Source: Schizochytrium sp. TIO01 (taxonomy: Eukaryota; Protista; Bigyra: Labyrinthulomycetes). From it: 64,000 nt of DNA. This document shows positions 3,201 to 33,616 of this stretch, piece by piece (positions within the stretch are counted from its first letter, which is position 1; the number at the start of each line of letters is the position of its first letter). Location: assembly GCA_004764695.1 (NCBI GenBank), contig SMSO01000007.1, positions 186,001 to 250,000 on the forward strand. The letters run 5' to 3'. The translations under genes and the position numbers were made by a program. The notes under the pieces are model-generated. The model saw only the letters and a list, made by a program, of their open reading frames with translations. It was not told where the DNA came from and did not search any database.

Positions 3201-3468
3201 GAGCCTTCACCAGAAGTAAATTCCTCTCATCTAGTTCTTGTTGCTTTTCCTCAAGCAATACCTTGTGCTCCAGGATCTCTTGCTCTAAGGATTCATCGCT
3301 TTCTCCCCCGTTGCGAAGTTTTGCAACTCTTTCTTCAAGATAGAAAATCCGCAGTTTCAGGTTAAAGTTCTCTTTGCTCAGCTTTTCTACCTCGCCTCTA
3401 GGTGCTCCATGACCACCGCTCCCGCCAGGACCGGGGCCAAACCCACTGTTTTGGGAGCGAAGATCCAT
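262..3468 (-). CDS. Long coiled-coil protein with N-terminal CM1/Cnn_1N (centrosomin motif 1, gamma-tubulin complex binding); CDK5RAP2/Mto1/myomegalin-like MTOC protein
   Basis: N-terminal VEKLSKENFNLKLRIFYLEER matches the CM1 consensus (LxKENFxLKLRIxFLEE). Two long heptad-rich regions are separated by a Q/S/N-rich linker. First in-frame ATG is at 3468 (the ORF track starts at an upstream TTG, 3513). Confidence 0.8.
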   Translation of the reverse strand: MDLRSQNSGFGPGPGGSGGHGAPRGEVEKLSKENFNLKLRIFYLEERVAKLRNGGESDESLEQEILEHKVLLEEKQQELDERNLLLVKARNAIEGLHTDLALCRAELEEARNNQAAVEALREREIEVDSLKHKVRELDGRDRKRLEDILTLNEQIRELESEKKRAVKLDKENLDLREDLDIKGNTLKQREAALEESRAENNKLAHEVESLRAKLIENARSLGDQRSREAELMTKLQESARTEEGRVTKLTQLLKQCEQERDQSERAAAIAERKAEDLEKKLEESHGIQEDMQAKIQRLERENQRMRDTYSTKEHSLRQQGELKQQEMRRELTEREIALKSELAELRGKLSALEFARDEAYQRADTDRERLEAMEAQLQKEDSSTHMQLKEAQAKLAAEIESRKEKETQLREALANSVEREKELRRHMRSWEGQIMGKLDDLLPSSLQHQQQLQQHQSLLSNAIPDQASYSSSTSPYADEVGIEEVGNEGMHSSSSRLRHGMRPTAERPEPRRWLDENFHSGNGQTNGPHLNVSNNRSMLDTSFSSHQHPSVIPQHQYQQQQEHNQQMGQSRSRSGSMRQPRSGSFGAQNHNQSNYNSNEVLMRLEDLQELKNAFAKSGIEMERKWQNKLKQIVGQLERTEVQLSNAEGKLAAFMHGMETLSKNSNVHLKGQALSMEKRYNELLGDLRQERQQNEDRIRILEARVQRSQDEKERLHEQLSSARERSAHLEGEVRQVRAELDALRDEKGRIDSRLEELYGDLGQFKENNRVLSLELEDRGQRIQDLNESQAALKQQLRNLRDDLHTKKQTVSTLERKLESTLRKLESRDSQLRESKARLDRALHGNNASSGMSYRNGKDSRTRHSSSRGEGNGNDDFEQTLWRQVEDTERAIRSSNSASQHRSQMSSNIMAEGGLRDGDVQALRLGEEAFASLLRGVSTLVEKTQVLLSRHGSSSYEVRDLLHANHRLAQELQRLGDDMETLHRRFLESTPAGSGLASATLMGSGLSYSTNGNSRRPVTPTSQSSRGWRRDTPKSARGSRMAAVHGNMLDQFGEMMSAIERQSSQLNDLR

Positions 3469-11386: not shown

Positions 11387-12934
11387 ATGTCAGGAGCGAA
11401 AATAGAGGAGTTGGAGAAATCCCTCCTTAGGCTGAAGGTTGTCGACTTAAAGTTGCTACTGAAGAAGTATGGTCTGCCTAGATCTGGCAACAAGTCTTCA
11501 CTTATGCTGAGGCTAGTCGAATACGCTGACCGGTTTGGTCAAGTGGATGAAATTCAGGAGGCCGCGAAAAACCCTCATGACAACGGCGATGAGATCAACT
11601 TGAGTTATAACAGCGCTTTTTTACGCCAGGCTTTGCATTCTCTGGACAGCAGCAGCACCAACCCCCAAAGTCTTGCTATGGACCAAGAAATAGCCCTGGG
11701 AAAGCTTAGAAAAGTTGCTGAGAGCGATCCTTTTGCGAGGCTCGAAAGTGTAGTTCACGAGATGAGCTTGCTTAATAGTAGCACAATGCCAACAGATATT
11801 TACGTTAATACCGCACAGATTCCACGTGAAACGCTTTTGCGCCCAAATACCCAACTATTGGTATATTGTGTACAGATTGCCAAGGGCAGAAAACAAATTG
11901 ATGAGGAGAAGAAGGCCGCGAAAAATGGTCGACCGGTTAAGGTCGAGGATTTCACTGTTCGCTGGCCGCCAGCTGTGACTGTCAATGTGAACAATAGCCC
12001 AGTGAAAGTTTTACAGCAAGCACCAGATGGCCGTTTGAGGATAAAGGCAGTTCGAGAACGTCCAGCAGATATTACCCAATTTGTCACATCTAGCCATAAT
12101 CCAAGCGTCAATTTGCAGATCATAGCTCCATACTGTGACCAACATGATGAAGGTGCGCGTTTTGCAGTCTCTGTAGTACTTTCCAAAAAACTTACTACTG
12201 ATGTGCTTATGGGAGCAATACCTGACTGTCCACGGGAGCGAACCCAAGAACTTGTGCGCATGGTCTTTGGTGATGGCGAAATTGAAATGAGCCCAATCTA
12301 CCTTGGCCTTAAAGACCAGGTTACGTTGATGATGATTGAGGAACCAGTGCGTGGACTCTCTTGTAACCACGTTCAATGTTTCGACGCGCGTTCCTATTTG
12401 AGCTTTCAGAGTTCTGTGAGAAACGCTAATTTTCGCTGCCCTGTGTGCGATAAGCATCCTGTTCTCCCAAATCAATTAGTCAAAGATCCGTGGTTTGCTG
12501 AGATCCTGCAGGAAATCGAAAAGTCAGGGAATGACGTGGAAAAGGTTGAACTATTCGAAGATATGACTTGGAGACCCTATGTGGAAGGGAAGACGCCGCA
12601 TATTACCAATTCTTCATCTTCGTCTTCGTCTTCCTCTGCCCCAATTGACAAGGATTCTGGTCATAGTCTTAGTATTGATAGCAACAGTAATGATGCAAGC
12701 GACGAGAACCTTGCCGATAAACAGGGTCTGGAAGGATCAATTGCGCTTGACAGAAGTACAGAGATAATGGAGGACCCTTTGACCCAGCTCCTCCACGGAA
12801 AATCCTCTTTGAAGCGTCCGCCATCTCCCATGTTCTCAGATCGTAGACCCGAACCTCCAAGATCACCTCCCCCTTTGCCTAGCAAACAGAGCGATGATGT
12901 TATCGAACTTCTTGATTCTGATGATGAGGATTAA
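11387..12934 (+). CDS. SIZ1: SIZ/PIAS-family SUMO E3 ligase (SAP domain, PINIT-like region, SP-RING/MIZ zinc finger, C-terminal SIM)
   Basis: SAP: LLRLKVVDLKLLLKKYGLPRSGNKSSLMLRL. SP-RING: PVRGLSCNHVQCFD...FRCPVCDK...LVKDPWFAEIL. PINIT-like WPPAVTVNVN...RPADIT. Terminal SIM plus acidic tail DDVIELLDSDDED. Confidence 0.9.
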   Translation: MSGAKIEELEKSLLRLKVVDLKLLLKKYGLPRSGNKSSLMLRLVEYADRFGQVDEIQEAAKNPHDNGDEINLSYNSAFLRQALHSLDSSSTNPQSLAMDQEIALGKLRKVAESDPFARLESVVHEMSLLNSSTMPTDIYVNTAQIPRETLLRPNTQLLVYCVQIAKGRKQIDEEKKAAKNGRPVKVEDFTVRWPPAVTVNVNNSPVKVLQQAPDGRLRIKAVRERPADITQFVTSSHNPSVNLQIIAPYCDQHDEGARFAVSVVLSKKLTTDVLMGAIPDCPRERTQELVRMVFGDGEIEMSPIYLGLKDQVTLMMIEEPVRGLSCNHVQCFDARSYLSFQSSVRNANFRCPVCDKHPVLPNQLVKDPWFAEILQEIEKSGNDVEKVELFEDMTWRPYVEGKTPHITNSSSSSSSSSAPIDKDSGHSLSIDSNSNDASDENLADKQGLEGSIALDRSTEIMEDPLTQLLHGKSSLKRPPSPMFSDRRPEPPRSPPPLPSKQSDDVIELLDSDDED

Positions 12935-15900: not shown

Positions 15901-17713
15901 ATGAAAATAGCGCTTTTGTTTTGGTTGACGGGTGGTTGTAGGTCCGCATTCGCTCTGTATTACATTTCAAAGTTCACGCTTTCTGTGCAGGGCATGTACA
16001 TCTTCCATGCTGACGTGAGCTCATCAACAAAAAAAACTCGTGGAAAGGAATGAAGGAGAAGTCCGAAAATCCTCCTTCTATAAGTATGGAGCTAGGCAGG
16101 CAGAAATTCGGGGCGAAGATCTACTTCTTCTTACAAATTGTTGTGATGGCGAGTTTTCTGATATGCGTTTTATAAGACATCTGGCCCATTCTGTGGAGTA
16201 CGAGGAGACATTTCGCTTTTAATTTACAACTCTTTCTGAGTTTTGTCACCAAATTTGACAAGAACACATACCAATGACTCTCCTCTGCTACCGCTGGGAA
16301 TGTTTACGTGTACAATCACCGTATCTCCTCACAAGACATATACAATGTGATTTTATAATGAATAGAAATAGAGCTATAGTCACTTATTTACAAGCACGTT
16401 TTCAGATATTGGCTTAAAGACTTAGGTACCTCATAAAGGAATAAATTAATCATGGAAAGCAAGCAAGCAGTTTTGAGCTACCTCTCAGAAGTTTGAGTTG
16501 CTCGATAATAACTAGAAGTACAGAACATTTACACCTTTTCTAACCAACCGAATGAAAAGGACGATTCGAAGTTCTTGTTCTGGAACTTTTATCCGAAGTA
16601 TTTTGATAAAGGGACACCCCCCAAAACACCATTTCACTATAAGTTGTAAGGTGATTGAAAGCATCTTTTGCATTGAAGTTGATATGAATATGATGTAGTC
16701 TCAGCCTCCCTTTAAGCTTTATCTGCAATCCGAGTAAAATGATATATACTGAGGCTCGTATGTATCGTTCTTGTGAGTATTTTGAAGTCGCTAGATTAGC
16801 TGCGAGCGAATCATATAGAGGAAAATTTTCGAGGCCTATATTGATAGGCTTTCGTCGTGGATCTGATAATTGAATATCAACTGCAGCGTCTAGGAAGACC
16901 ACAATTTGAAAAGTGCTAATATTTTGTATGTGAGTTCCACGTAGCAAATCTTCAGCATATGATGTAAATTTCGATGGAAATCGACGGCTTTGTTAGAGCA
17001 CCGCATGCCGGAGTAAACTACCCAGGGATTAAGAGGTCAGAATGCCAAGTTGAAATGCTTGCAGGAATTACATCTTTGGTTTGAATAGAACAATGTTCTA
17101 GAACACTCCATCAACCCTCCGTACTAAATCAGAGTCGTTCTGTGGGCGACTTTTTTTGTTTTCACCTCCAATCTACTATGGACTACTTTTAAAACATGTA
17201 GCCGTGGTCCGGTAATGGAAACAATACTATAACGAATATCTTGACTCAGTTCACTATGCTACAAGACATCGTGCAGCAACATCACGTTCGGAAGTGAAAA
17301 GATTTGTCAATTGAAGAAGCACACTGCTAATAGTCAATTATGTCAAACTACAACTACCAGGGCAGAGAACTAATGGCATATATATATATACTTCTACTAG
17401 CTGTTGCTTTTCATCATAGATTCCCCGTGTTTCCTTGAGGCGTCTGCCCCCACCATTAGCTAACCGACTCATTAGATACATTTAAATTCATAAAAACAAA
17501 GTGTTGTAATGCTTTTGACTAAGCAATATATAACTTCAACTTTGTTTTATATTTGAGAGAAAATTAATGGATTTGGTTCCCTACTAACCTACCTACCTAC
17601 CTACCTACCTACATGAACCTATCATATGATGCGCAAAATTCTTTCTTAATCAAAAGAAAGGCTGAGAGGGCACGAGAGTTCTTTCGTTCAGTGTCCGAAT
17701 CGCTCTCAAAGAT

Positions 17714-17820
17714 CAAGTAACACTTTTCTTTTCTATTCTTAAGGACTTTTGAGAGCACATGGAAAGCTCAAGTTACACTTTTCTTTTCTATTCTTGAGGA
17801 CTTTTGAGAGCACATAGAAA
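17714..17820. repeat. Local tandem duplication, ~55-bp unit x2
   Basis: CAAGT[A/T]ACACTTTTCTTTTCTATTCTT[A/G]AGGACTTTTGAGAGCACAT[G/A]GAAA occurs twice in tandem. Confidence 0.85.
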
Positions 17821-18569
17821 ATGCTACTTCCTTAATTTAAAGTGTTTTTTAATTTCGACTTGGAAGAGCGACGTGATGAATAAGAGGCAAATATTAAGAC
17901 TCTACGTAGACATGGGCATCCTTACAATCTGATGATCGGAGCGAAAGTCCGAATCTATAGCAATAGAGGCATATCTCAGCACAGCCTCAGAGATGATTAG
18001 TGGTCGCCCGCTCTACTGTAGTTTGACAGGCACCTAATACAATTCTCTCTGTAGTTCTGTTTGCAGCCGCTCTCACTACTGAGTTAATTTTTTTTCACAT
18101 GGCAGATAGAGATTTTTAAAATACTACTATTGGAAGAAGTGGCCCTTTAGAGTGGAACTGTTTGGTTCATGTTTTTTAGAAGGTAGTGGAATAGGGAAAT
18201 CATCATCAGAAGTATCAAAGTAGCTCAATCGTACTCAAAACTAGTATGGTGATTTTGAGAAGAAGAGCCAAAACAACCAATGTTAACAATAAGAGATTCA
18301 AGTTCTAGATAGAACATTACAATTCGTTTTTTTAATAACTCGAAAAAGGTTTTTAAAACGAAAAATCACATAATCTGAATAATTTGAGAGCTTTTGGTAT
18401 TTAGTTTAGAGAGGGAAGGCCCATATTAAAACCCGTTTGTAACTCCTTGAGAGCTTCTTCGTCACCAACTTTAATGAAAATATGAAAGCCAATGCAAAAC
18501 CAAAACCAACACCAGAACCAGATTGGGCATGGAAAGACAGACCACGAGCATCACGGTTGCCGAGGAACC

Positions 18570-20372
18570 ATGAGTAGCGAAGGAGCAGGGAGCTCGAGCA
18601 ACAACAAGGCGAAGTCCAAACCATTCGTCGATTTGTGCCACTTTGATGATAGCGATAGCGATAGCGATAGCGATAGCGATGACGACCACGACCAGGGCAA
18701 CACGGAATCCCACGACTCCTCTGACCCGCTAAAACATGAGCAAGACGAACCTGGACCATCTTTGCAGCGTACAGGAGCGTCGAGCTCGTGTACTCAAGCT
18801 CAAGGTGCAGAGTCTGAGTCTGAATCTGCAGAAGAAAAGCACAACCATGAAGAAATACTGAACAACTGCTTTGATAATGAAGCAGATAGCAGCGGGCCAG
18901 CGGATGAAGCAGATGGCAGCGGGCCAGCGGATGAAACAGATAACGGCACAGTGGGGAACGACGCAGCTCGAAGAGAGACTGCTGTCCCAAGTAACACAGC
19001 AAAGATAACTAAAGGTCCCCAAGCTCAACGTCGAATTTCTAAATCGCCCAATTCTCCCGATTTGGTGAAAAAGACCAGAACTCTGCTTATGAAAATCGTC
19101 GACTATTTTCTTGATGAGTCGGACTCTCCTCTGGATGTAAAGGTTGATTTTTACCAGATAGACAACGGCACAAAACTAAAGCTGAACAATGATGAGGTCT
19201 CTGCAAGAGATGTCGGACTGACACCTGGGCTTCTGTGGAGAAGTCTCAATACCCTTGCTCTTAACATGAACGTTGATGAAGATAAAAGAACAGAAGCACT
19301 CAACGAAGTCCTTGCCATGGACAATCAGGGGTTCAAAATCGAGAAGTTTGAGGCATGTGAAGGAAGGGAGGACAATCTGATTGGGTCGTTTAAGATTCAC
19401 TTAAATGAAGGAAAGGCTTCCGGAAAACCACGCGTGGCTGGTACTAAACATGCTCAGAGCGAATCGGATAAAAACGAAGGAAAGGCTTCGGATGATGAGG
19501 ACTCAAATGAGGATCAGGATTCGCTCCGCCGCTCAAGCCGTCGCCAGACAAAAACCTCATTTTATCATAACACTGAGCACTGTCGCGGTTCTAAACGCAA
19601 ACAAGAAACAGATGAGGACGCAGATGATGCAACGGATCGAACTTCGCGCCGCCGTTCAAGCCGAAAGGCTTCGGATGATAAGGACTCAAATGAGGATCGA
19701 ACTTCGCGCCGCCGTTCAAGCCGTCCCCAGTTGCAAACCTCATTTCGTCATAACACTGAACATTGTCACGGTTCTCAACGCGAACAAGAAACGGATGCTG
19801 AAGCAGACACTTTGTCCAAGAAGGCTCAAACCCAATTCGTCAGTAGCAGTAGCTGCAATGTTAAGAACTCCGCGACCACTAGTCGTAGTGATGATGATAG
19901 CATCAGTAACCAGAGTAATAGCGATGATGAGGTCATCAGTCATAGTGGGGGAAGCAACACAAGCAGCACCAACCAAAGTGATACAGCTTCCATCAATACG
20001 TCTACGTCTGGCACACCCTCAATCGAAACTGCTCAAAACAATATTGCAAACGAAGCTGTTGCTTGGAGAAGATTCAACATGTTGTATTCGGCGATTTCCC
20101 AATATAAAAAGCCTCGGCACTTAAAAGAGATGCTTTTAGAATTAAAGAGCGAAGATGATGTTAGGAAAACACTCGAATTGTGGTTCAGAAACAATTCCAG
20201 TGATACAATGATTCAGCTCGTACACGAGCTTCTTATAGAAGAAGGTGAAGAAGACAATTCTAGGATAATACAATTGTTTTATGAAATGGCTCCTCGTGTT
20301 TTAAAACATTCGTTCGAAAACCTCATGAAAAAGGAATTCGCAGACGCCTTAAGGTTACCCAGATTAGCATGA
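18570..20372 (+). CDS. Uncharacterised acidic/low-complexity protein, array copy A (SIM-like PFVDLC + DS run, central globular domain, RRSSR repeats, C-terminal helical domain)
   Basis: Intact ~600-codon ORF with two paralogues in the array. The ATG at 18570 is positionally conserved with those at 23047 and 28405; an upstream in-frame ATG at 18492 is possible. Confidence 0.8.
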   Translation: MSSEGAGSSSNNKAKSKPFVDLCHFDDSDSDSDSDSDDDHDQGNTESHDSSDPLKHEQDEPGPSLQRTGASSSCTQAQGAESESESAEEKHNHEEILNNCFDNEADSSGPADEADGSGPADETDNGTVGNDAARRETAVPSNTAKITKGPQAQRRISKSPNSPDLVKKTRTLLMKIVDYFLDESDSPLDVKVDFYQIDNGTKLKLNNDEVSARDVGLTPGLLWRSLNTLALNMNVDEDKRTEALNEVLAMDNQGFKIEKFEACEGREDNLIGSFKIHLNEGKASGKPRVAGTKHAQSESDKNEGKASDDEDSNEDQDSLRRSSRRQTKTSFYHNTEHCRGSKRKQETDEDADDATDRTSRRRSSRKASDDKDSNEDRTSRRRSSRPQLQTSFRHNTEHCHGSQREQETDAEADTLSKKAQTQFVSSSSCNVKNSATTSRSDDDSISNQSNSDDEVISHSGGSNTSSTNQSDTASINTSTSGTPSIETAQNNIANEAVAWRRFNMLYSAISQYKKPRHLKEMLLELKSEDDVRKTLELWFRNNSSDTMIQLVHELLIEEGEEDNSRIIQLFYEMAPRVLKHSFENLMKKEFADALRLPRLA

Positions 20373-20872
20373 TGTTGGGAATAGCAACAATCTAACTGCA
20401 TAAATAGGCTATAACTTCTTTCGAATGATATCGTTTTCATTAATTATGTTATCGAAGTATATATATCAAATCAGCCAGTTACCTTTTCCATAGCTTACCA
20501 TTTGTACATCACGCAAAGTCATAGGACATAGAGGTCATTAGACTCAAGCTTGATTATAATGAATCACACAGTGCTGAGATCTCCAGGCGAACGAACTAGT
20601 GGACAAGACATTGCTAGGGCTTACAATAGAGCAAGAGGAGGCAGCCAGATTCATGTGGCTGCCAGAGTCAAGAATCAAAGTGCGACTACATATTACCTAG
20701 ATCCAAGTATAGTGTTATTGGAATCGATAGCTGAAGAGGTTGAATTAACCTAAACCTATCAATCTCGAACACTGTTCAAGAGTATCTAGCTTCCTCAATT
20801 ACTACATGAATTCATCTGACCTGGAATTCATTCACCAGGACAGAAGTTTGCTAACTCTTGAATCAACCTTCA

Positions 20873-21090
20873 TATTGCAGAGTAGCTTGTGCTGTGAAGC
20901 GTGCAGAAGTAGTCTGACAAGAATGGCGAGCTCAGGAGAAAGAGAAAGAGGATGATATATGAGTTATTGGGGTTTGGGGTCTGGTTGCAGGCAGGGATGA
21001 ATGTATGATGTCAGTCCAACGGATAGGAGAACTAGGATAGGATAGGTTTGGTTAGGTTAGGTTAGGCAGTAGCTGTATATTACTTCAATA
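20873..21090 (-). mobile_element. Solo LTR (218 bp) of the Ty1/copia family seen at 47 kb
   Basis: Homologous to 46356-46563 and 47057-47253. Termini TATTG...CAATA, flanked by a perfect 5-bp TSD CTTCA (20868-20872 and 21091-21095). Confidence 0.92.
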
Positions 21091-21779
21091 CTTCATAAAG
21101 CATTCATCAAGACTCTTGCCTTCATCTTTACAGTCAACTTCAAGCTGACCAGAATCAATTTTCAGCGCAGAGCCCTTGTTACATGTGACTATCTGCTATG
21201 AGACATCCACTTCAACCGGATCGAATCGATCCAAGCAACATACTGAAAATAGTATTCATAACAGCTTGAAGTTGAAAGAGAGAATTGATGTACGATAAAC
21301 TTAGAATCATTCATCTTCTTGAACATCTGGATTATTGACCTCCCAATTCAAAAGTCTTGAAGCCTTATCCTCGCGCCTACTTTAGTCTTCAGATGGATCA
21401 ATGATACTGGCTAGATTATTTGATTCTCGAATGGAGGCAAACATTCGAGGAGTAGTTTGCTCAGAAGGCATGGTTACTGGTTTCCTTGCATTATTTGGGT
21501 TAGCAGGCTGGATGTGAGAAAATGAGTAAGCTTTTTGGAGTTCTTCAAACGGCGCACGTGCTCTCCCAAATGCTTGCTGCCCGGAATGCAGCCAGATTTC
21601 ACCAAGTATATGAGCAAACGGTGTCTCAATTGCAAGTTTTTGCGTATTGTAGTAGGGAAGCGATGCCGGGTATTCTCAAGGCACTGTTTGAGAAACTCGG
21701 AAATGGTGTTGCGTATAGTTTTGATACAGCCTTTATTTCTGTAAGTATATTTACGCCCTATAAAAAGCCAAGTGCGATC

Positions 21780-22250
21780 AAATGTGATAATTTTACGAGC
21801 GTCTTTCACAGGACCCATCGACCTTTTTCGTGAGAGATTGCATGGCCGCAATACGGACAGAATACCCGGCTTGTATCTTTTGAAACATCTTGCTTGGGTA
21901 CCAAGCCCCGGCTGCTCTTGCATAGAAGGTCTCTGTTGAGCTCCCAGCCTCACACTTTGGCCACCATAACTAATGATCAGACATGACATACGCATCTTTA
22001 ACAGTCATATGCATGACCTTTTCAGTCACTTCCTTGAGAATTCCATTTCAAATGAGTGATAATCTTCTTTCGCTCTTCCTTGTTTTCCTGATTTTCGTCT
22101 ACTACGCTCTCCTCATCGACAACGCAATCTTGCTCATGACCGGTTTTATCCTCGACAAACTCAGAAGGCTTGTTCGTATCATCTGCTTTTGTTCCATCTT
22201 CTTCTTCTTCTTCCAGCTCGAGCATCTGCCTCTGTTTCCACTCCAGCATC
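21780..22250 (-). pseudogene. Possible decayed fragment of a NOB1-like gene (acidic linker + Zn ribbon)
   Basis: Minus-strand frames give an acidic stretch (LELEEEEEDG...VVDEESVVDENQENKEE), then EKVMHMT and VSKDTSRVFCPYCGHA, resembling the NOB1 motifs ACMT and TxDxSRVFCPxCGx. Several stops and frameshifts. Confidence 0.35.
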
Positions 22251-23046
22251 AGCTATGCTTGCCTTACACAATTGCTAGGTTCGAAACCACCTAACCATCT
22301 GAATCTGCAAACCAATTCAAGAGCTTAGGATGCAGGACCAAATAAACAATACCTGACTCCCGAAACATGGCACCAACCACAACCAATTAATTCATGTGCG
22401 AAGCTCACCATGTGACAGGAATGCGAAATGTACAACCCTTTTCACCATCCTCTCCAGTGTTGTTGTGCCGAAGTTTTATATGACAACACTGTTATCCTAG
22501 TGAGGAGAACGATGAAATTTTTTTCAGAGGTCCTCTCAATATATTAACAACGAAAGCTTCCACTTGAATATGTTACACTCTGTTACTGCAGAAGCGGTGG
22601 CGTGGAGAGGAAGATACTAATTTTGTGATGAAACTCATCACAAGATCAACTATGTGTCCCACTTTGAATTTGACCCTCACATGGAAACATGCTATTCACC
22701 TCTCGAGACAATACCTTAAAGTTGATAAATGCATGAAGTACAGTACAGTCAATAAAGAAAACAAGACTATATTTCAACCAAAGTCATATATGTTTGGTCA
22801 CTTTTTAGTCTCTTAGCACCACCAGCTATAGCCACCTTACCTTAAAGTTAATATTCTCTGTTTCCCATATTCCCCGTGTTCCCATGTTACAAGAACAGGC
22901 CTATCCTCGCAAACTCTTTATGTACGGAGGCCCCCCCAAAAGTAAAAAATTCTTTGTCACAAAAGTAAGAATTCCAAGCACAAGCAGAGCAGAATCAGAT
23001 TGAGGGTGGAAAGACAGTGCATGAGCATCGCGGTTACCGAGAAATC

Positions 23047-25152
23047 ATGAGCAGCGGAGAAGCAGAAATTCCGAGCAATGACAGTGCGAAGTCCAAGGGG
23101 CTCTTGAAATGGCGCGAAATAAGCGATGACGAGAGTGACTCAGGTTCGTTGTCAGACGATGAGCAGGAAGAGCCGGGACCAAATCTACAGCTCACAGGAG
23201 CGTCGAGCTCGTGTACTCAAGCCCAAGAAGATGACAGCGAAGATAAAAGGGTTCCACAAGTTGCAGAGTCTAAGTCCGAATCTGCAAAAGAAAAGCACAA
23301 TCATGGAGAAATACCGTACAATGGCTGTGACAACCAAGCAGATAGCAGCGGCCCTGCAGATGAAGCTGGTGACGGCAAGGTGGGGAACAACGCAGCTGAG
23401 AGAGAGACTCCTGGCCCAAGCAACATAGCAAAGATGGCTGAGGGTCCCCAAGATCAACGTGAATTGCCCAAATTGGTGAAGAATGCAAAATCTATGCTTA
23501 AGATAATTACCCAGTATATGTCTGATAAGTATCGTAAGCCAGACCCTCCTTTGGTTATAAAAGTCGATTTTTTCGAGACTCGCAACGGGCAAAGGGGCAC
23601 GAGACTAGAACTGAATGATGAACCTGTCTCGAAAGAAAACATCAGACATGGACCTGGACAAATCTGGAGTAGTATCAAGGCCCTCGTTTCTGGAATGAAC
23701 GTTGACGAAGATACAAGAATAGAAGCACTCAACGAAGTCCTTGCCGCGGACGACTGGAAGTTTAAAATCGAGAACTTTAGGGAATGTGAAGGGAGAGAAG
23801 ACCATCTGATTGCGTCGTTTGAGATTCACTCAACTGACCAAGCATCTTACAGAAAACGGCACTTGCTTGATACTAAACATGCTCAGAACGAATCGAATGA
23901 AAACGAAGGAGAGGCTTCAGATTGTGAGGACGCAGAACATACGGCCTTGGATGATGAGGTCTCAGATGAGGCTTCGGATAGTGATGATGGGGCTTCGAAT
24001 GATGAGGACTCAGATGATGCAAAGGATCGAAATTCGCGTCGCCGCTCAACCCGTCTTCAGAAACAAACCTCAATTAGTCATAACAATGAGCGCTGTCGCA
24101 GTTCTAAACGCAAACAGGAAGCAGATGAGGACGCAGATGATCAGGACGCAGATGATCAGGGATCAGATGATCGGGACACAGATGATGGAAATACAGATGA
24201 TGAGGACTCAAATGATGCAAATGATCAAGATGCGCCCCTCCGCTCAACCCATCTTCAGAAACGAACCTCAATCAATCATAACAATGAGCACTGTCGTGGT
24301 TCTAAACTCAACCGAGGAACAGGTGCCGATGTAGACGATGCAAAGGATCGAAATTCGCGCCGCCGCTCAGCCCGTCTTCAGAAACAAACCTCAATTAATC
24401 ATAACACTGAGCACTGTCGCGGTTCTAAACGCAAACAGAAAGCAGATGAGGACTCAAATGAGGATCAGGATTCGCTCCGCCGCTCAAGCCGTCGCCAGAC
24501 GCAAACCTCATTTTATCATAACACTGAGCATTGTCACGGTTCTCAACACAAACGAAAAACGGATGCTGAAATCGGCACTTTGTCCAAGAAGGCTCAAACC
24601 CAATTCGTCAATAGCAGTAGCTGCAGCGTTGAGAACTCCGCGAGCACTAGTCGTAATGGTAGTGATTGTCCGAACATCAGCAACCAGAGTAATAGCAATG
24701 GCGAGAGCAACAGTTGTAGTATGGGTAGCAACGCAAGCAACTCGAACCAACGTGATACAACTGCTATAAATACAACTACGTCTGACACACCCTCAATCGA
24801 AGCTGCTCAAAACAATACTGCAAACGGAGATACTGATTGGAGAAAATTCAAAATGGTCTACAAATCGTTTCCTAAAGATGCGAAGCTTCAGTCAGCAAAA
24901 GAAATGCTCAGAAAAGTAAAACACGAAGATGTTGTTAGGAAAATACTACGATTGTTGATAGAAGACGAAGATCGTGAGTATTTAATGTCTCAGCTGATAA
25001 AGGAGCTTTTCGTAGAAATAGGTGGAGAAGATATTGTCGAGAAAATACTCGGATTGTTGAACGAGATGGATTACGGTGATAAAAAACGTTTCGAGCACAA
25101 GCTCATAATGAATGCCTTCATGGACTATCAAAACACTATATGCACCAACTGA
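23047..25152 (+). CDS. Uncharacterised acidic/low-complexity protein, array copy B (four RRSxRL/HNxEHC repeats)
   Basis: Intact ~700-codon ORF, paralogous to copies A and C; indels among copies preserve the frame. Confidence 0.8.
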   Translation: MSSGEAEIPSNDSAKSKGLLKWREISDDESDSGSLSDDEQEEPGPNLQLTGASSSCTQAQEDDSEDKRVPQVAESKSESAKEKHNHGEIPYNGCDNQADSSGPADEAGDGKVGNNAAERETPGPSNIAKMAEGPQDQRELPKLVKNAKSMLKIITQYMSDKYRKPDPPLVIKVDFFETRNGQRGTRLELNDEPVSKENIRHGPGQIWSSIKALVSGMNVDEDTRIEALNEVLAADDWKFKIENFRECEGREDHLIASFEIHSTDQASYRKRHLLDTKHAQNESNENEGEASDCEDAEHTALDDEVSDEASDSDDGASNDEDSDDAKDRNSRRRSTRLQKQTSISHNNERCRSSKRKQEADEDADDQDADDQGSDDRDTDDGNTDDEDSNDANDQDAPLRSTHLQKRTSINHNNEHCRGSKLNRGTGADVDDAKDRNSRRRSARLQKQTSINHNTEHCRGSKRKQKADEDSNEDQDSLRRSSRRQTQTSFYHNTEHCHGSQHKRKTDAEIGTLSKKAQTQFVNSSSCSVENSASTSRNGSDCPNISNQSNSNGESNSCSMGSNASNSNQRDTTAINTTTSDTPSIEAAQNNTANGDTDWRKFKMVYKSFPKDAKLQSAKEMLRKVKHEDVVRKILRLLIEDEDREYLMSQLIKELFVEIGGEDIVEKILGLLNEMDYGDKKRFEHKLIMNAFMDYQNTICTN

Positions 25153-28100
25153 CCTTGGAAATAGCTACAAATGACAACAAACTAAAAGCATAAATAGGCT
25201 ATATCTTCTTCAACAGAAGTACATTATTTTCATTAATTATGTTATCGATGGATTTTCTCATTTTTACTTTTTGAACTTTGTTGAAACCTTTGAAAATGAG
25301 CAAAAAGGAAAATACCAAACTAGCCAGCCAGCCTTTCTACAGCTCACCATTAGTACATCACGCAAAGTCATGGAACATAGAAGTCATTAGACTCAAGCTT
25401 CATTATACTCAATCACACAGCCCTTGATGCATGCGACTATCTGCTATGAGGCATTCATTTCAACCGGATTGAATCGATCCAATCAGCACACTGAAAATCA
25501 AATTCAGAACAGTTTGAAGTTGAAAGAAAGATTCGATGTACGATCAACTTAGAATCATTCATCTTCATGATCATTTGAATTAGGAGATGGTGAAAGTGAG
25601 ACTTGAAAGCTATAGGAGCCTGTTCATCTGAGAACCGAAATTTAGACTGCAAGAATTCTTGCTCTCTGGTAACTATAAGTTTATTTATTGATAGCACAAC
25701 ATGGAGTTGGATAGATATCCGTAACGGGGGCGACCAATTTCGAGTCTGATAGTTTTGATCTATCAATTTCTATATCTTGTATCGATAAACTTCAATGGCA
25801 TGGTATGGCATGGCATGGCATGATATATTTTTTGAAAGTTGGACATCACCCAAAAGACTCTAGTAGATATTCAATGACTAGATTACTATTGTACACACTA
25901 GTCTCGATCTATCGCCCTCGACTTGCTGGACTACTCGAAAATAAATGTTTCCAGTTAGACAGAACCTTTGAACTGGAATTTAAAGATAGTATTGCCTCGG
26001 GTTAGGATGAGTTTGTTGGCATGAAATAAGTTCTTGACTTGTGGTAGTATCATTAAGTTTTGTAAGCTGTGGCGCATCGAAAATTCAGCTACTGCGATTG
26101 AAATGGGGCTTATGTAGGATTAGGATTTGATATAATAAAGAGGCATCCTGACTTCAAGGAATGCACTTAACCTATACTAAATATGTATGTATAGATTGTC
26201 CGAAATAGTGTGATGTAAAAAAAGTGAATGATAGGGAGTTTGGATAGAAAAGTATTTTTTGGTTTCAGTTATTGGCTTGAAAACTTAGTTACTTCATAAG
26301 GGAATAATCAATTAAGGAAAACAAGCAATCTTGAGTAAGCTCTCAAAATGTTTGGGACGAAGTAGAAGAGATGGCGTCAAGTTTTAAGTTGCTCGATAAT
26401 AAATAGAAACACAGAACATCTACATTTTACCTATCGAAGCGAGTTAATAAAAAAAGACGATTTAAAGAACTCACTTTAGAACCTATATCCGAAGTATTTT
26501 AATAAAGGGGTATACCCCTCAAATACGGATTCTACTATAAATCGAGAGGTGATTCAAACGAGCTTCTGAAATTCAGTTGATAATATAGTCCCAGCCTCCC
26601 TTTGAGCTTTATCTACAATCTGAGTAAGATGATATGAACTGAGCCTCGTCTGCATCGTTCTTGTGGATAGTTTGGAGTCGATACACTACTAGCTGCGCGT
26701 GAATCATATAGAGGGAAAGTTAGGAGGCCTCTCTTTATAGGCTTTCCTTCTGAGTTTGTTGACGTATATTAACCGCAGAGTCTAAAACAACGCAGTTTGA
26801 GAGGTGCTATTATTTTGTTTGTGAGGTCCGGATCGTAAATTCTCAGTAGCGTGAAGTAGATTTCGATGGAGATGAATGGCTTTGTGAGCACATCGCACGT
26901 TGGAGTAGACCAAGTAGGGGTTAAGGGGTCAACAAATGAATTTGAAATTCCATGTTTCGTTCTAGGACCCTCCATCCACCCTCCGTACTAACTCAGAGTA
27001 CTTCTATGGGCAGTTTTTTTTTTTTTTTTCCCACTTGCTGTCTACTATGGACTGCTTAAAAGCAATGTAGCCGTGGTCCGGTAATTGTTGCAACGCTCCA
27101 ACGAGAATTTTGACCGAATTTGTTATGACGTCATGTGTTGGGGTTAAAACGTTTTCCGATTAAAGGACAATTGAAAAATAAATATGTGCAGTTTTTGACT
27201 ACGCAGGCCAAATTGCAACCACCAGGGCGGGCGGAAAAGTGGTAGTGATGCGACATCGATTTGAACATTTTATTGTATACCCCTGTTAGTCAGTTCCCCG
27301 TGTTCCTGCAGGGTGTCTGCCCACTGACCGACTCAGTAAGTGCATTTTATGTATAAAAAGGAACGTCGCAATGATTTCGACTATCCGATATACGAACCTC
27401 TATTTTGTTTTATATTTGAGAGGAAATTCCCCTCTGACCTCCTACCTGCCCTACCCACCTACGTACGTACCTCCATAAACCTATGCGCAAAACTCTTAAA
27501 GGAAGTGTTCCACTGAGAGGGCTCGAGAGTTCTTCAGTTCAGAGTCGCTCTCAGAAATATCCAGTTACTCTTCTTTTTAAAAGTGTTTTTTTAATCTTGA
27601 GAGCAGGGTAGAAAATGCTAACTGGAAGCTTGTTTTTTCTTTTTTTAATTAAAAACCTTGACCGGAGAATGATGAATACGAGGGAAACATTACTAAGACT
27701 CTACGTCCTCCACAATACGAAAAGATGGACGTCCTTACAGTCATTTGATTGTTCCGAAAGTCTGAACCTATAGCAACAGGAGCATATCTCGGCACAGTCT
27801 CAGAGATGAATAGTGGTCGACCTCTCTACTGTAGTTTGGCAGACACCTCATGCCATCCCCTATATAACTAAGTTCTGTTCGCAATACATACGCACCATCT
27901 TATAGATAAGAGATTTAATACAGTGTCGTGCTATTATCAGAAGACGTTGCGCTTTAAAGTGGAACTGTTTGGATCATGCCGTATAAGCTTTAGGAGGGAA
28001 AATCGCCATCAGAAGTATCAAAATAGATCAATCATACTCAAAACTGGTAAGGTGTTTTTGAGTACTTAAAAAGGAAGAGCCAGAGCAAACCAATTTTGCC

Positions 28101-28404
28101 AATTAGATATTTGAGTACTAGGTAAAACATAATAATTCGATTTTTTACTTGAAAAAGATTTTAAAAACGAAGAATCACAGTTTTGAGGGCTTTTAGTTTG
28201 GAAGTTTGGGGAAGAGTATTTTAAGATTAATATTTAATTGAGAGAGGGAAACCCAATTTGAAACTGATTTTTTAAACCTTTCGTCGCACAGTGTAAACAA
28301 CATGTAAAGAAAAGTATATAAGCCAAGCGAAACCAGAGCAGAACCAAAGCAGAACCAGATTGAGCTTGGGAAGACAGAGCATAAGCATCACGGTTACCGA
28401 GAGC

Positions 28405-30255
28405 ATGGAAAAAGCAGGAGGTTCAAGCAACAACAAGGAGAAGTCCAAACCATTCGTCGATTTGTGCTACCTAAGCGACAGCGATAGCGATGACGACCAC
28501 GACGAGGGTAACACGGAATTCCACGACTCCTCTGACCCGCTAAAACATGAGCAAGACGAACCGGGACCATCTTTGCAGCGTACAGGAGCGTCGAGCTCAT
28601 GTAATCAAGCCCAAGAAGATGACAGCGAAGATAAAAGGGTTCCACAAGTTGCAGAGTCTAGGTCCGAATCTGCAAAAGAAAAGCACAACCATGGAGAAAC
28701 ACCATACAATGGCTGTGACAACGAAGCAGATAGCAGCGGCCCTGCAGATGAAGCTGGTGACGGCAAGGTGGGGAACAACGCAGCTGAGAGAGAGACTCCT
28801 GGCCCAAGCAACATAGCAAAGATGGCTGAGGGTCCCCAAGATCAACGTGAATTGCCCAAATTGGTGAAAAATGCAAAATCTATGCTTAAGATAATTACCC
28901 AGTATATGTCTGATAAGTATCGTAAGCCAGACCCTCCTTTGGTTATAAAAGTCGATTTTTTCGAGACTCGCAACGGGCAAAGGGGCACGAGACTAGAACT
29001 GGATAATAAACATGTCTCGAAACTAAACATCGGACATGGACCTGGACAAATCTGGAGTAGTATCAAGGCCCTCGTTTCTGGAATGAACGTTGACGAAGAT
29101 ACAAGAATAGAAGCACTCAACGAAGTCCTTGCCGCGGACGACTGGAAGTTTAAAATCGAGAACTTTAGGGAATGTGAAGGGAGAGAAGACCATCTGATTG
29201 CATCGTTTGAGATTCACTCAACTGAACAAGCATCTTACAGAAAACGGCACTTGCTTGATACTAAACATGCTCAGAACGAATCGAATGAAAACGAAGGAGA
29301 GGCTTCAGATTGTGGGGACGCAGAACATACGGCCTTAGATGATGAGGTCTCAGATGAGGCTTCGGATAGTGATGATGGGGCTTCGGATTATGAGGATTCA
29401 GATGATGGGGCTTCGAATGATGAGGACTCAGATGATGCAAAGGATCGAAATTCGCGCCGCCGCTCAGCCCGTCTTCAGAAACAAACCTCAATTAATCATA
29501 ACAATGAGCACTGTCGCGGTTCTAAACGCAAACAGAAAGCAGATGAGGATGAAGATGATGCAAAGGATCGAAATTTGCGCCCCCGCTCAACCCGTCTCCA
29601 GACGCAAACCTCAATTGATCATAACACTGAGCACTGTCACAGTTCTCAACACAAACGAAAAACGGATGCTGGTATCGGCACTTTGTCCAAGAAGGCTCAA
29701 ACCCAATTCGTCAATAGCAGTAGCTGCAGCGTTGAGAACTCCGCGAGCACTAGTCGTAATGGTAGTGATTGTCCGAACATCAGCAACCAGAGTAATAGCA
29801 ATGGCGAGAGCAACAGTTGTAGTATGGGTAGCAACGCAAGCAACTCGAACCAACGTGATACAACTGCTATAAATACAACTACGTCTGACACACCCTCAAT
29901 CGAAGCTGCTCAAAACAATACTGCAAACGGAGATACTGATTGGAGAAAATTCAAAATGGTCTACAAATCGTTTCCTAAAGATGCGAAGCTTCAGTCAGCA
30001 AAAGAAATGCTCAGAAAAGTAAAACACGAAGATGTTGTTAGGAAAATACTACGATTGTTGATAGAAGACGAAGATCGTGAGTATTTAATGTCTCAGCTGA
30101 TAAAGGAGCTTTTCGTAGAAATAGGTGGAGAAGATATTGTCGAGAAAATACTCGGATTGTTGAACGAGATGGATTACGGTGATAAAAAACGTTTCGAGCA
30201 CAAGCTCATAATGAATGCCTTCATGGACTATCAAAACACTATATGCACCAACTGA
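28405..30255 (+). CDS. Uncharacterised acidic/low-complexity protein, array copy C (A-like N-terminus, B-like remainder, two repeats)
   Basis: Intact ~616-codon ORF. C-terminal ~190 aa read identical to copy B. TATA-like TATATAAG lies ~85 nt upstream of the ATG. Confidence 0.8.
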   Translation: MEKAGGSSNNKEKSKPFVDLCYLSDSDSDDDHDEGNTEFHDSSDPLKHEQDEPGPSLQRTGASSSCNQAQEDDSEDKRVPQVAESRSESAKEKHNHGETPYNGCDNEADSSGPADEAGDGKVGNNAAERETPGPSNIAKMAEGPQDQRELPKLVKNAKSMLKIITQYMSDKYRKPDPPLVIKVDFFETRNGQRGTRLELDNKHVSKLNIGHGPGQIWSSIKALVSGMNVDEDTRIEALNEVLAADDWKFKIENFRECEGREDHLIASFEIHSTEQASYRKRHLLDTKHAQNESNENEGEASDCGDAEHTALDDEVSDEASDSDDGASDYEDSDDGASNDEDSDDAKDRNSRRRSARLQKQTSINHNNEHCRGSKRKQKADEDEDDAKDRNLRPRSTRLQTQTSIDHNTEHCHSSQHKRKTDAGIGTLSKKAQTQFVNSSSCSVENSASTSRNGSDCPNISNQSNSNGESNSCSMGSNASNSNQRDTTAINTTTSDTPSIEAAQNNTANGDTDWRKFKMVYKSFPKDAKLQSAKEMLRKVKHEDVVRKILRLLIEDEDREYLMSQLIKELFVEIGGEDIVEKILGLLNEMDYGDKKRFEHKLIMNAFMDYQNTICTN

Positions 30256-31583
30256 CCTTGGAAATAGCTACAAATGACAACAAACTAAAAGCATAAATAG
30301 GCTATATCTTCTTCAACAGAAGTACATTATTTTCATTAATTATGTTATCGATGGATTTTCTCATTTTTACTTTTTGAACTTTGTTGAAACCTTTGAAAAT
30401 GAGCAAAAAGGAAAATACCAAACTAGCCAGCCAGCCTTTCTACAGCTCACCATTAGTACATCACGCAAAGTCATGGAACATAGAAGTCATTAGACTCAAG
30501 CTTCATTATACTCAATCACACAGCCCTTGATGCATGCGACTATCTGCTATGAGGCATTCATTTCAACCGGATTGAATCGATCCAATCAGCACACTGAAAA
30601 TCAAATTCAGAACAGTTTGAAGTTGAAAGAAAGATTCGATGTACGATCAACTTAGAATCATTCATCTTCATGATCATTTGAATTAGGAGATGGTGAAAGT
30701 GAGACTTGAAAGCTATAGGAGCCTGTTCATCTGAGAACCGAAATTTAGACTGCAAGAATTCTTGCTCTCTGGTAACTATAAGTTTATTTATTGATAGCAC
30801 AACATGGAGTTGGATAGATATCCGTAACGGGGGCGACCAATTTCGAGTCTGATAGTTTTGATCTATCAATTTCTATATCTTGTATCGATAAACTTCAATG
30901 GCATGGTATGGCATGGCATGGCATGATATATTTTTTGAAAGTTGGACATCACCCAAAAGACTCTAGTAGATATTCAATGACTAGATTACTATTGTACACA
31001 CTAGTCTCGATCTATCGCCCTCGACTTGCTGGACTACTCGAAAATAAATGTTTCCAGTTAGACAGAACCTTTGAACTGGAATTTAAAGATAGTATTGCCT
31101 CGGGCTAGGATGAGTTTGTTGGCATGAAATAAGTTCTTGACTTGTGGTAGTATCATTAAGTTTTGTAAGCTGTGGCGCATCGAAAATTCGGCTACTGCGA
31201 TTGAAATGGGGCTTATGTAGGATCAGGATCTGGTATTATAAAGAGGCATCCTGACTTCAAGGAATGCACTTAACCTATACTAAATATGTATGTATAGATT
31301 GTCCGAAATAGTGTGATGCAAAAGAAGTGAATGATAGGGAGTTTGGATAGAAAAGTATTTTTTGGTTTCAGTTATTGGCTTGAAAACTTAGTTACTTCAT
31401 AAGGGAATAATCAATTAAGGAAAACAAGCAATCTTGAGTAAGCTCTCAAAATGTTTGGGGCGAAGTAGAAGAGATGGCGTCAAGTTTTAAGTTGCTCGAT
31501 AATAAATAGAAGTACAGAACATCTACATCTTTCCTGGTCAACCGAATCAAAAAAGACAATTTGAAGTTCTTGATCTGGAACAT

Positions 31584-32030
31584 TTATCCGATGTATCTTG
31601 ATAAAGGGACACCCCCAAAAATAACGATTATACTATAAATTGTGAGGTGATTCAAAGCATGTTTTGAATTGAAGTTGATACAAATATGATGTAGTTCCAG
31701 CCTCCCTTTGAGCTTTATCTGGAATCCGAGTAAGATGATATGAACTGAGCTTCGTCTGCCTCGTTCTTGTGGATAATTTGGAGTCGATACACTACTAGCT
31801 GCGCGTGAATCATATCGAGGGAAAGTTAGGAGGCCTCTCTTAATAGGCTTTCCTTCTGAGTTTGTTGACGTATACCAACCGCAGAGTCTAAAACAACACA
31901 GTTTGAGAGGTACTATTATTTTGTTTGTGAGTTCCGCATCGTAAATCCTCAGTAGCGTGAAGTAAATTTCGATGGAGATGAATGGCTTTGTGAGCACATC
32001 GCACGTTGGAGTAAACTAAGTAGGGATTAA
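31584..32030 (-). pseudogene. Decayed minus-strand ORF carried in the repeat unit (homologues at ~16540-17040 and ~26500-26975); product unknown
   Basis: Similar peptides (…IILLG[FL]QIKLKGRL…, LTKPFISIEIYFTLLRIYD…) in three copies, each broken by different stops or frameshifts. Coding origin uncertain. Confidence 0.3.
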
Positions 32031-32316
32031 GGGGTCAACAAATGAATTTGAAATTCCATGTTTCGTTCTAGGACCCTCCATCTACCCTCCGTACTGAGAA
32101 GTGATACAGATACGTCTTTATGATGTCGAGGCAGTTCAATAATATTCTCTTCTTGAGCAGTCAGGCTAAGAACAGAGTATGATGATTCATGAAGGAGAGG
32201 TTCAGCGTACCTATACACGCATATTTTTCTCCAGGTGCATATTGATATGTAACAAAACCAATGAGAACAAACGTGTTTTTAGGATAATTTAAGGAAACAT
32301 CCAATGACCTGTTGAA

Positions 32317-32509: not shown

Positions 32510-33616
32510 TAGCTAGTTCAACTAAACTTTGAGAGTTGCCCTTCCATAAAGGTTTTTTCTCTAACAGCGAAGCGCTAAGTATAGCTACAGAACCTCTTTA
32601 CGACATGACTGTGCAAGGCTAAAAGGAATACCTCTTTGGACACCATAGCTCGATGGCGACACGATGGCATGGCGGTGACGTGTGTGGCGCTGCTCGAGAT
32701 GCCACCACGGAGCGGAGGGAACAAGGCAAAGCATCGAGGGGCGTTTGCAAAGCTACCGGGACAGCAGGCCCCATATTCAACAAGTAAGACAGACAACCCT
32801 TATCTCAATACTCAATACTCAGTTTTTAATTTTTTATTTTTTATTTTTTAAATTAAAATTAAATTAAATTAGTTTTAACTTACTTTAAAGAAAAGTTGGA
32901 AACTACGTCTACTAACAGTTCTTTAGGCAGTTCTATGATTTATTTTTTTCCATGGAAAAACAGAGAAATAAGTGGTCTAAGCCTCTTACAAGTGCTTCCG
33001 ACCAGCATTTTTACCTAGTCCGGTAAGAAAAAAAGTATACGACAAGGTGTATGAATCTATCTCTAACAAGTGTTGTAACGAGGTTAGTCGATCTTAGAGA
33101 CTACTGGACCACGTGTAAGCGATATTCTTAAGAGGTCTCGCGCTCTCAATAGAACAGACCTACCCGAGGTGACATTAGCCGATCAGACTTGCGCAATATA
33201 AACTATTGCTCCGGCGAAGACGCAGACCACCGCGACAGCGACTAGACAAACAAAGCTCACGCCGCTCGCGATCAGCTCGGCGCCGAACGGAGAGACCCAC
33301 CCTTCTCCGCTCTATCCTTGCGCGATCCGCTCTTGGGCGAGTGAAAGCAGGACCTTCACTCATTGGCCGAGACTTAAAAGAATTTGCGCAGGGCCGTCTG
33401 CGAATTAACTCGCACGCTCCCAGGCGCGATAGCTCGCACGCTCACAAGCGCGGCAGCTCGCAGAGTCACACACGCGGCAGCTTGCACGGCCATAAGCCAC
33501 ATTAGCTCGCACGCTCCCAGGCCCAAGCGCTCACTCCCTGGGCTAGAAAAAGCAAGCCTTTTATTTTCTTTAACCTTTGTTTGTCTTTCCGTTTCATACT
33601 AAGCGGTCTTATCAAA

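Follow-up and report, generated by a model that had tools for sequence, protein, structure and literature searches.

Short arginine-containing elements that bind the acidic patch of the nucleosome have been proven in the HMGN proteins (RRSARLSA), Dsup (RRSSRLTS) and Dot5 (RRSARIAT), in all of which the arginines at positions 1, 2 and 5 are essential (PMC12487698, PMC13347269). The authors of the Dsup/HMGN structures expect that further proteins of this kind exist, in what they term "an untapped realm" (PMC12487698). The SUMO-interacting motif (SIM) consists of a four-residue core with at least three V, L or I residues (Cys is also accepted) beside an acidic or phosphorylatable stretch, and a core followed by Ser, Asp and Glu residues is the arrangement described for the phospho-regulated SIMs (PMC12751080). 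In the present work we have analysed a 64,000-nucleotide stretch of the genome of Schizochytrium sp. TIO01, which is referred to below as the window (positions 186001–250000 of contig C6 in assembly G000, a 64 Mb genome in 37 contigs). The genome is eukaryotic with long unbroken open reading frames (ORFs), and within the window three tandemly arranged genes, designated A, B and C, encode proteins that carry sequences resembling both of the above motifs. Based upon the results presented here, it is well supported that these genes belong to an unrecognised, recombining, expressed and fast-evolving family.

The gene family in the window and on contig C5

The three ORFs are intact, lie on the + strand and are arranged head to tail between about 18.5 and 30.3 kb of the window, downstream of a gene for an SP-RING protein. 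The ORFs extend from 18492 to 20372 for A (626 aa), from 23017 to 25152 for B (711 aa) and from 28360 to 30255 for C (631 aa), and in full-length alignments the B and C proteins are 56–57% identical to A. The true starts are likely the Met residues that are conserved in the family, at positions 18570 (A), 23047 (B) and 28405 (C), from which proteins of 600, 701 and 616 aa would be made; the sequence at this Met is MSSEGAG in A and in D4 (a paralogue on contig C5, see below), variants of it are found in B and in the C5 paralogue D2, and C has MEKAGG. The proteins share one layout, comprised (from the N- to the C-terminus) of a hydrophobic core with a run of Ser/Asp residues, an extended low-complexity region of acidic character, a domain of ~117–123 aa, an acidic tract, basic repeats of ~38–40 aa each, a Ser/Asn-rich linker and a helical C-terminal region of ~105 aa. 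The basic repeats number two full and one partial in A, four in B and two in C. The initial annotation of this DNA had described three intact paralogues of 600–700 aa with a single layout and two to four Arg-rich repeats per copy, and the protein lengths, the end-to-end alignment and the repeat counts are all in agreement with it. Most of the sequence of the family proteins is of low complexity (acidic, basic or Ser/Asn-rich), and basic clusters of the KRK type are present. A secreted or biosilica-type protein was considered and rejected, as no N-terminal hydrophobic signal is seen when the sequences, including those of A, B and C, are read directly. The features of the three genes are as follows.

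18570..20372, + strand: paralogue A, 600 aa, with the conserved MSSEGAG start; a further in-frame ATG lies upstream at 18492
18621..18686, + strand: SIM-like core PFVDLC followed by the (Asp-Ser)n acidic tail of A, the length of which varies between strains
19059..19409, + strand: alpha/beta domain of A, ~117 aa, from the alignment and an AlphaFold2 model
19503..19799, + strand: basic repeats of A, two full units of ~38 aa and one partial, with three RRSSR and two HNTEHC-GS[KQ]R motifs
20028..20369, + strand: helical C-terminus of A, with six helices predicted and with ~30-aa RRF..L[FY]..P....LKE.L repeats
23047..25152, + strand: paralogue B, 701 aa when counted from the conserved Met
23098..23163, + strand: position of the N-terminal motif in B, with the core replaced by GLLKWREI and the Ser/Asp/Glu tail retained
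23470..23838, + strand: alpha/beta domain of B; its patch 23614–23646, in the beta2–beta3 loop, differs from C by non-synonymous changes only
24016..24567, + strand: four basic repeats of B, carrying RRSTRL, LRSTHL (degenerate), RRSARL and RRSSRR; TS[FI].HN.E[HR]C comes after each of these motifs
24808..25149, + strand: C-terminal helical region of B, identical to that of C
28405..30255, + strand: paralogue C, 616 aa, a mosaic with ~250 nt at the 5' end A-like and the remainder B-like
28450..28497, + strand: SIM-like core PFVDLC with acidic/Ser tail of C
28858..29226, + strand: alpha/beta domain of C, from the alignment
29434..29670, + strand: two basic repeats of C, with RRSARL and RPRSTRL

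The genome-wide search for copies that the initial annotation had proposed was carried out by six-frame comparison with A followed by a profile of the 117-aa domain, and it identified five further paralogues that are clustered at positions 1,092,978–1,108,315 of contig C5.

L015:4979-6106, + strand: D0, 376 aa, one domain
L008:1378-3402, + strand: D1, two domain copies, of two sub-types in tandem
L012:1057-2349, - strand: D2, 431 aa, on the strand opposite to the rest of the C5 cluster
L007:1552-3309, + strand: D3, two domain copies, of two sub-types in tandem
L016:3339-5315, + strand: D4, two domain copies, of two sub-types in tandem

The proteins D1, D3 and D4 are 586–675 aa in length. The ~117-aa domain is present in 11 instances in eight genes forming these two clusters, and it has no other occurrence in the genome. 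The three genes of the window are thus part of an eight-gene family with five members on C5, and the array in the window does not represent the whole family. The C5 cluster is flanked by genes for a protein kinase (L015:928-2433) and a lysine methyltransferase (L016:8029-9339), and no gene for a SUMO ligase is found in its vicinity. The C-terminal motif of ~30 aa is present in single copy in the C5 genes and is followed by the stop. An intron through which the C-termini of these genes would be extended was also considered and was rejected, as TAA follows directly upon ..EKFG and no downstream exon resembles the helical region of the C6 genes.

Selection, recombination and transcription

The indels by which the three window genes differ from each other are all multiples of three nucleotides (14 of 14 between A and B, 13 of 13 between A and C, and 4 of 4 between B and C; 31 in all), as had been noted in the initial annotation. 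The ORFs have diverged at the DNA level by ~25% between A and B and by 6% between B and C. When random substitution was simulated at half of the A–B divergence, none of 20,000 ORFs stayed open and the mean number of stops was 10.6. Because all of the indels are in frame and none of the simulated ORFs remained open, the open frames are far beyond chance expectation, and A, B and C are functional genes that are kept open by selection. Neutral decay of pseudogenes is rejected on the basis of the same two observations. Pairwise ratios of non-synonymous to synonymous divergence (dN/dS), determined by the Nei-Gojobori method, were 0.56–0.81 for the whole genes. The N-terminal region with the SIM-like motif had the lowest values of all regions (0.42–0.53), and the folded type-1 domain gave values of 0.64–1.04, with one small-count comparison at 2.3, which in pairwise form are unable to separate positive selection from relaxation because they are confounded by recombination. 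For the alpha/beta domain, the comparison of B with C is based upon two synonymous and eight non-synonymous differences (Sd 2, Nd 8). The second domain type, which is found in the C5 genes, had a dN/dS of 0.19 between D3 and D4 and of 0.76 between D3 and D1.

The initial annotation had also described the array as a recombining one, and several observations are in accordance with this description. In a self-comparison of the window, the interval from B to C was found to constitute a 5.1-kb repeat with 95.8% DNA identity (24333–26989 corresponds to 29430–32095), and the unit of A is older (~70% DNA identity). The 5' end of C is A-like, with 18663–18804 matching 28474–28615 at 94%. The synonymous divergence (dS) between B and C is 0.27 in the N-terminus and 0 over the last 190 codons, and that between D3 and D1 is a mosaic along the gene (1.41, 0.02 and 1.22). 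Two proteins derived from MMETSP transcripts of another strain, P0001 and P0004, are D3-like in the N-terminus and D1-like in the C-terminus, which suggests the presence of strain-level recombinants or of copy-number differences in the C5 cluster. Because of the B–C repeat, the A-like 5' end of C, the mosaic dS values and these two mosaic proteins, the array is, on sequence comparison, one that has been shuffled by unequal crossing-over and gene conversion. Repetitive sequences at the edges of the units and in the 3' flank of A are of two kinds.

16400..17245, no strand: fragment of a dispersed repeat bordering unit A on its 5' side (69–76% in self-blastn), recurring at 26263–27114 and 31366–32054
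20572..21167, no strand: nested insertion, made up of two high-copy elements, within the 3' flank of A and without a counterpart in units B and C

The two recurrences of the first repeat lie at the borders of unit C and of the array as a whole, and the repeat is found at at least 20 other genomic loci with 65–85% identity. Being old, dispersed and located where the duplicated units meet their edges, this repeat could serve as a substrate of unequal crossing-over. The insertion in the 3' flank of A splits a region of homology (20463–20571 and 21168–21334 together correspond to 25312–25582), and its use as a query yielded 434 genomic candidates in a first look. The high-copy part is an inner element of ~220 nt (about 20873–21092), which has a very high contig depth in the RNA-like runs and may be a transcribed long terminal repeat.

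The evidence for expression consists of assembled contigs from three RNA-sized runs belonging to three studies (X6, X8 and X16). These contigs cover the coding region of A from 18585 or 18770 to 20674, and X8 and X16 show coverage again from 23086–23194, where B starts, whereas X6 has no depth there. No contig of the three runs was found over 17400–17990 (upstream) or 22325–22915 (intergenic); the interval 17400–18581 is empty in X8 and X16, and X6 has one low-depth contig in it at 18047–18234. This coverage pattern is that of RNA rather than DNA, and the genes are transcribed. The proteins P0001 and P0004, which are of the C5 type, also originate from MMETSP transcript assemblies, so that the expression check envisaged in the initial annotation has a positive outcome for the family. 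Because the contigs of greatest length align colinearly with the genome over 18585–20674, the ORF of A is without an intron. In the 3' flank of A, 114 letters (20617–20732) are skipped in three runs, for which we have no explanation. Some variation among the sequence sets was also noted. The (GATAGC)n tract at 18644–18680, which encodes the Asp-Ser tail of A, has a 6-nt deletion at 18644 in X1 and X16 relative to the assembly, and X1 has a 15-nt insertion at 18382.

Relatives and predicted folds

In searches of Pfam with A, B, C, D0, D1 and D4, no family was detected at E values up to 0.1, and this includes the HMGN family (HMG14_17). A HMMER profile search of the domain against 1.84 billion cluster representatives led to three matches, of which P0002 is identical to D0 (100%), P0003 corresponds to D2 (99.5%), and P0001 is ~80% identical to D1 as well as being a mosaic with D3. 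No homologue was found in a word-indexed protein search with the domain of A and the whole of C, and no match was obtained in the ESM Atlas for both folded regions, among PDB sequences with the profile and B as queries, or in a JGI metagenome scan with a single-domain query. Within the libraries searched, the family appears to be confined to the species of Schizochytrium sp. TIO01 or its closest kin.

An AlphaFold2 model of the domain, based upon an alignment of 11 rows, had a predicted local distance difference test score (pLDDT) of 87 and a predicted template modelling score (pTM) of 0.81, and the predicted order of its elements is a helix, three strands, a short helix, two helices and two strands. 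Foldseek comparisons of this model revealed no match in the PDB at E 0.001 or better and nothing significant among the viral structures of BFVD. In VIA-align, the best matches were with the N-terminal domains of the GspE/PilB/VirB11/PilT ATPases, with Z scores of 6.3 to 4.1 against a stated background of 7–8, and no fold is assigned to the domain because these scores are below the background of the tool. The likeness to these N-terminal (PAS-like) domains consists of a similar order of helices and strands, with 8dze_A giving Z 6.3 and a root-mean-square deviation of 3.8 over 101 residues, and 1p9w, 2gza and 4ksr giving Z 5.1–5.3. The ATPase matches also agree with one another. However, the sequence identity is 7–16%, the family has no ATPase domain, and Foldseek is blank. 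Judging from the model, the similarity to the secretion ATPases is one of a common alpha/beta arrangement and not of kinship. The C-terminal region was predicted by AlphaFold2 as six helices (pLDDT 74), for which Foldseek gave no match in the PDB. VIA-align identified only generic helical repeats of the MIF4G/HEAT/VHS-like type, which were not adopted as an assignment since their Z scores (at most 7.9) are under the background of ~13 for helical models.

The initial annotation had recognised neither of the two folded domains, and with Pfam, PDB, ESM Atlas, JGI and Foldseek all blank, this assessment is upheld; a known housekeeping family, to which an assignment would have spoken against its proposal, was found neither in Pfam nor in the structure searches. 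The 117-aa domain, having a confident predicted fold and no outside relatives among 1.84 billion proteins, is well suited for structural study as a clear example of a domain that is either young or evolving very fast.

Possible functions and comparison with known systems

We tentatively propose, giving it somewhat less than an even chance, that the family proteins act in the nucleus as multivalent chromatin adaptors by means of their SIM-like and arginine-anchor motifs. At the N-terminus, the [V/I/F]-V-D-L-C core and the Ser/Asp tail behind it would work as a SIM, the RRS[A/S/T]R(L) sequence of each basic repeat in the window copies would anchor the protein through its arginines to the acidic patch of the nucleosome, in the manner of HMGN, Dsup and Dot5, and the fast-evolving folded domain would provide a variable specificity. 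Six of the eight paralogues (A, C, D0, D1, D3 and D4), including two of the three in the window, conform to the sequence definition of a SIM. The core is VDLC (after F) in A and C, VVDL in D4, VVYI in D1, ILTI in D0 and LCHL in D3, and in all six it is directly followed by a stretch of the type SDSDSD.., SDNESNDE or EEDSEDE; the tail is also retained in B. The serines of this tail resemble CK2-type sites. Exact RRS[AST]R sequences are present three times in A (RRSSR), three times in B (RRSTRL, RRSARL and RRSSRR) and once in C (RRSARL), with Leu/Ile at position 6 in two of the B motifs and in that of C; this position is R, K or P in A, and the fourth repeat of B also lacks Leu/Ile. The putative binding to SUMO and nucleosomes that was put forward in the initial annotation is, at the level of sequence, sustained by the SIM definition in six of eight paralogues and by RRS[A/S/T]R in A, B and C, whereas exact RRSxR is not found in the C5 paralogues. 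Such binding is a reasonable, purely motif-level hypothesis, which is weaker for the C5 genes.

A predicted complex of residues 27–90 of A with a proxy SUMO (P0008, a full-length relative with 76% identity over the longest exon of the organism's own SUMO gene) gave values of 0.30 and 0.29, the mark being 0.34, and these count neither for nor against the interaction. AlphaFold 3 is reported to mis-model even the HMGN2 complex (PMC12487698). The apparent SUMO gene of the organism (L036; contig C32, 393800–394600) is split by introns, with one exon encoding VRDQNGEE...TPADL, and the public gene calls P0006 and P0007 end at the boundary of this exon.

A number of observations weigh against the chromatin-adaptor proposal. 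Exact RRSxR is absent from all five C5 paralogues D0–D4, which have RRKSKRL, RPSSSRV, RPRSRRV or none. The best-conserved part of the basic repeat is instead TS[FI].HN.EHC.GSKRK, a His/Cys cluster with a KRK resembling a nuclear localization signal, for which we offer no explanation; no full basic repeat lacks HN.EHC[RH]G followed by SKRK, which occurs 11 times in seven genes. Since this sequence is better kept than RRSxR, nucleosome anchoring may not be the core function of the family. The core of B (LLKW.EI) is doubtful, and D2 has neither core nor tail. Both motifs are short and lie within low-complexity sequence, in which chance matches are common. The dN/dS near 1 of the folded domain fits relaxed constraint equally as well as diversifying selection. 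Lastly, the assignment of the runs to RNA is a guess of the tool, and their contigs give no expression levels. As a separate observation, the HN.EHC[RH]G string contains up to four potential metal ligands within seven residues.

Another account is quite possible, in our estimate having rather less than an even chance. According to it, the family consists of fast-evolving, disordered orphan proteins, and the strings that resemble SIMs and RRSxR arise as side effects of a low-complexity composition of the acidic/Ser and Arg/Ser kinds. The HNxEHC-KRK repeat and the domain without a match would then carry the real function, which would be unrelated to SUMO or nucleosomes and might belong to RNA, nucleolar, metal or stress biology, to name some examples. 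The conservation of HN.EHC.GSKRK in all 11 full repeats together with the loss of RRSxR on C5, the missing hydrophobic SIM core in B and D2, and the fact that no known fold or family indicates chromatin are all in its favour. Against it, the N-terminus has the lowest dN/dS of all regions (0.42–0.53), and its core and acidic tail are kept equally far from the start in comparisons with a dS as high as 1.0–1.4. Further, RRS[AST]R occurs at a fixed position in the repeat unit seven times in three proteins, and in two of these instances six of the eight residues of the HMGN consensus are matched exactly. A different possibility is that a transposon or an integrated virus brought the genes along as cargo or left them behind as remnants, for which the dispersed-repeat fragments at the unit edges, the nested high-copy insertion at 20572–21167 and the lack of homologues outside the species would speak. 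We consider this very unlikely, as the domain is present in two clusters only and never at the other loci (at least 20) of the repeats, no significant match was found among the BFVD viral structures, no transposon or viral Pfam domain is present, and the G+C content resembles that of the surrounding genes. Dispersed copies moving as transposon cargo, which the initial annotation had named as a finding that would refute its proposal, were thus not found, the other loci of the flanking repeats being without the domain.

The SP-RING gene upstream of the array, which is outside the family, was central to the initial annotation.

11387..12934, + strand: gene for a Siz/PIAS-type SUMO E3 ligase with SAP, PINIT-like and SP-RING domains, given for context only

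Its zf-MIZ (5e-13, 49.1 bits) and SAP (2.2e-07, 30.8 bits) matches in Pfam are above the cut-off, and that to PINIT (4.2e-05, 24.4 bits) is under the 27-bit cut-off. The array and this SIZ1-like ligase could form a linked SUMO-dependent unit for silencing or defence. Copy A is indeed the next intact gene, as the initial annotation had stated, on the same strand and 5.6 kb downstream, with no ORF of at least 160 aa in the interval, and the ligase itself ends in a SIM and an acidic tail (..DVIELLDSDDED, about 12890–12931), as do the PIAS proteins, for which SIM-bearing partners are known in other eukaryotes. Against this, the C5 cluster holds five of the eight genes of the family and has no ligase in its vicinity, the ligase gene of the window is the sole zf-MIZ match detected in the genome, transposon debris lies between the ligase and the array, the remaining genes of the window (ALG3, CBS, Sel1, ARM-BTB and centrosomin-like) are unrelated, and gene adjacency in eukaryotes carries little functional weight. 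A linked unit is hence unlikely. Because of the C5 genes, the single zf-MIZ gene and an otherwise ordinary neighbourhood, the adjacency to SIZ1 is most likely coincidental and not a trait of the family. The functional tie to SIZ1 suggested in the initial annotation is accordingly not borne out, the majority of the family lying between kinase and lysine methyltransferase genes, and its own caveat that the linkage could be coincidental has proved appropriate; the SIZ1 neighbourhood is not usable as functional evidence. The next gene downstream of the array encodes an ARM-repeat BTB protein (33581–37501), just upstream of which is a 24-nt tandem repeat (33409–33488). The other genes of the window include, besides ALG3, CBS and Sel1, a centrosomin-motif coiled-coil gene (262–3513, - strand) and a PWWP-PHD chromatin reader (58203–61004). 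For the ORF at 48904–50085, Pfam gave no family at E 0.001 or better.

A role of the family in defence or silencing is speculation. By analogy, the proteins might be protist counterparts of the Sp100/PML-like nuclear factors for restriction or silencing that evolve fast in animals. They would combine iterated HMGN-like tethers and an N-terminal phospho-SIM with the 117-aa domain as a diversifying module by which transposons or viruses are recognised, a scenario that we regard as improbable. If the motifs work as read, the family would be a recombining and rapidly changing chromatin protein family in a marine microbial eukaryote. To our knowledge, chromatin-based defence has been little explored in such organisms.

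Returning to the proposal that these are nuclear chromatin adaptors, the family resembles the SIM-bearing adaptors (Daxx, PML/Sp100, RNF4 and PIAS) in having a core of the V-x-L/V-V-D-L type directly before a Ser/Asp/Glu stretch. It differs from them in lacking any sequence or domain homology and in possessing a single putative N-terminal SIM rather than SIM clusters. With vertebrate HMGN1-5, tardigrade Dsup and yeast Dot5, the family has in common a disordered, highly charged character and the R-R-S-[A/S]-R-[L/I] element. The RRSARL of B and C is identical to the HMGN consensus over its opening six residues, the RRSSR of A is also that of Dsup, and the family is lineage-restricted, as Dsup is. 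In contrast to these proven binders, the family is a putative one, has folded domains and no HMGN homology, and its motif is degenerate in the C5 paralogues. The motif is also iterated, occurring one to three times per protein inside a longer repeat with an HN.EHC.GSKRK tail. If the motifs work as read, the family would represent, after Dsup and Dot5, a further lineage-restricted case of an HMGN-type arginine-anchor protein, and one with several copies of the motif per protein.

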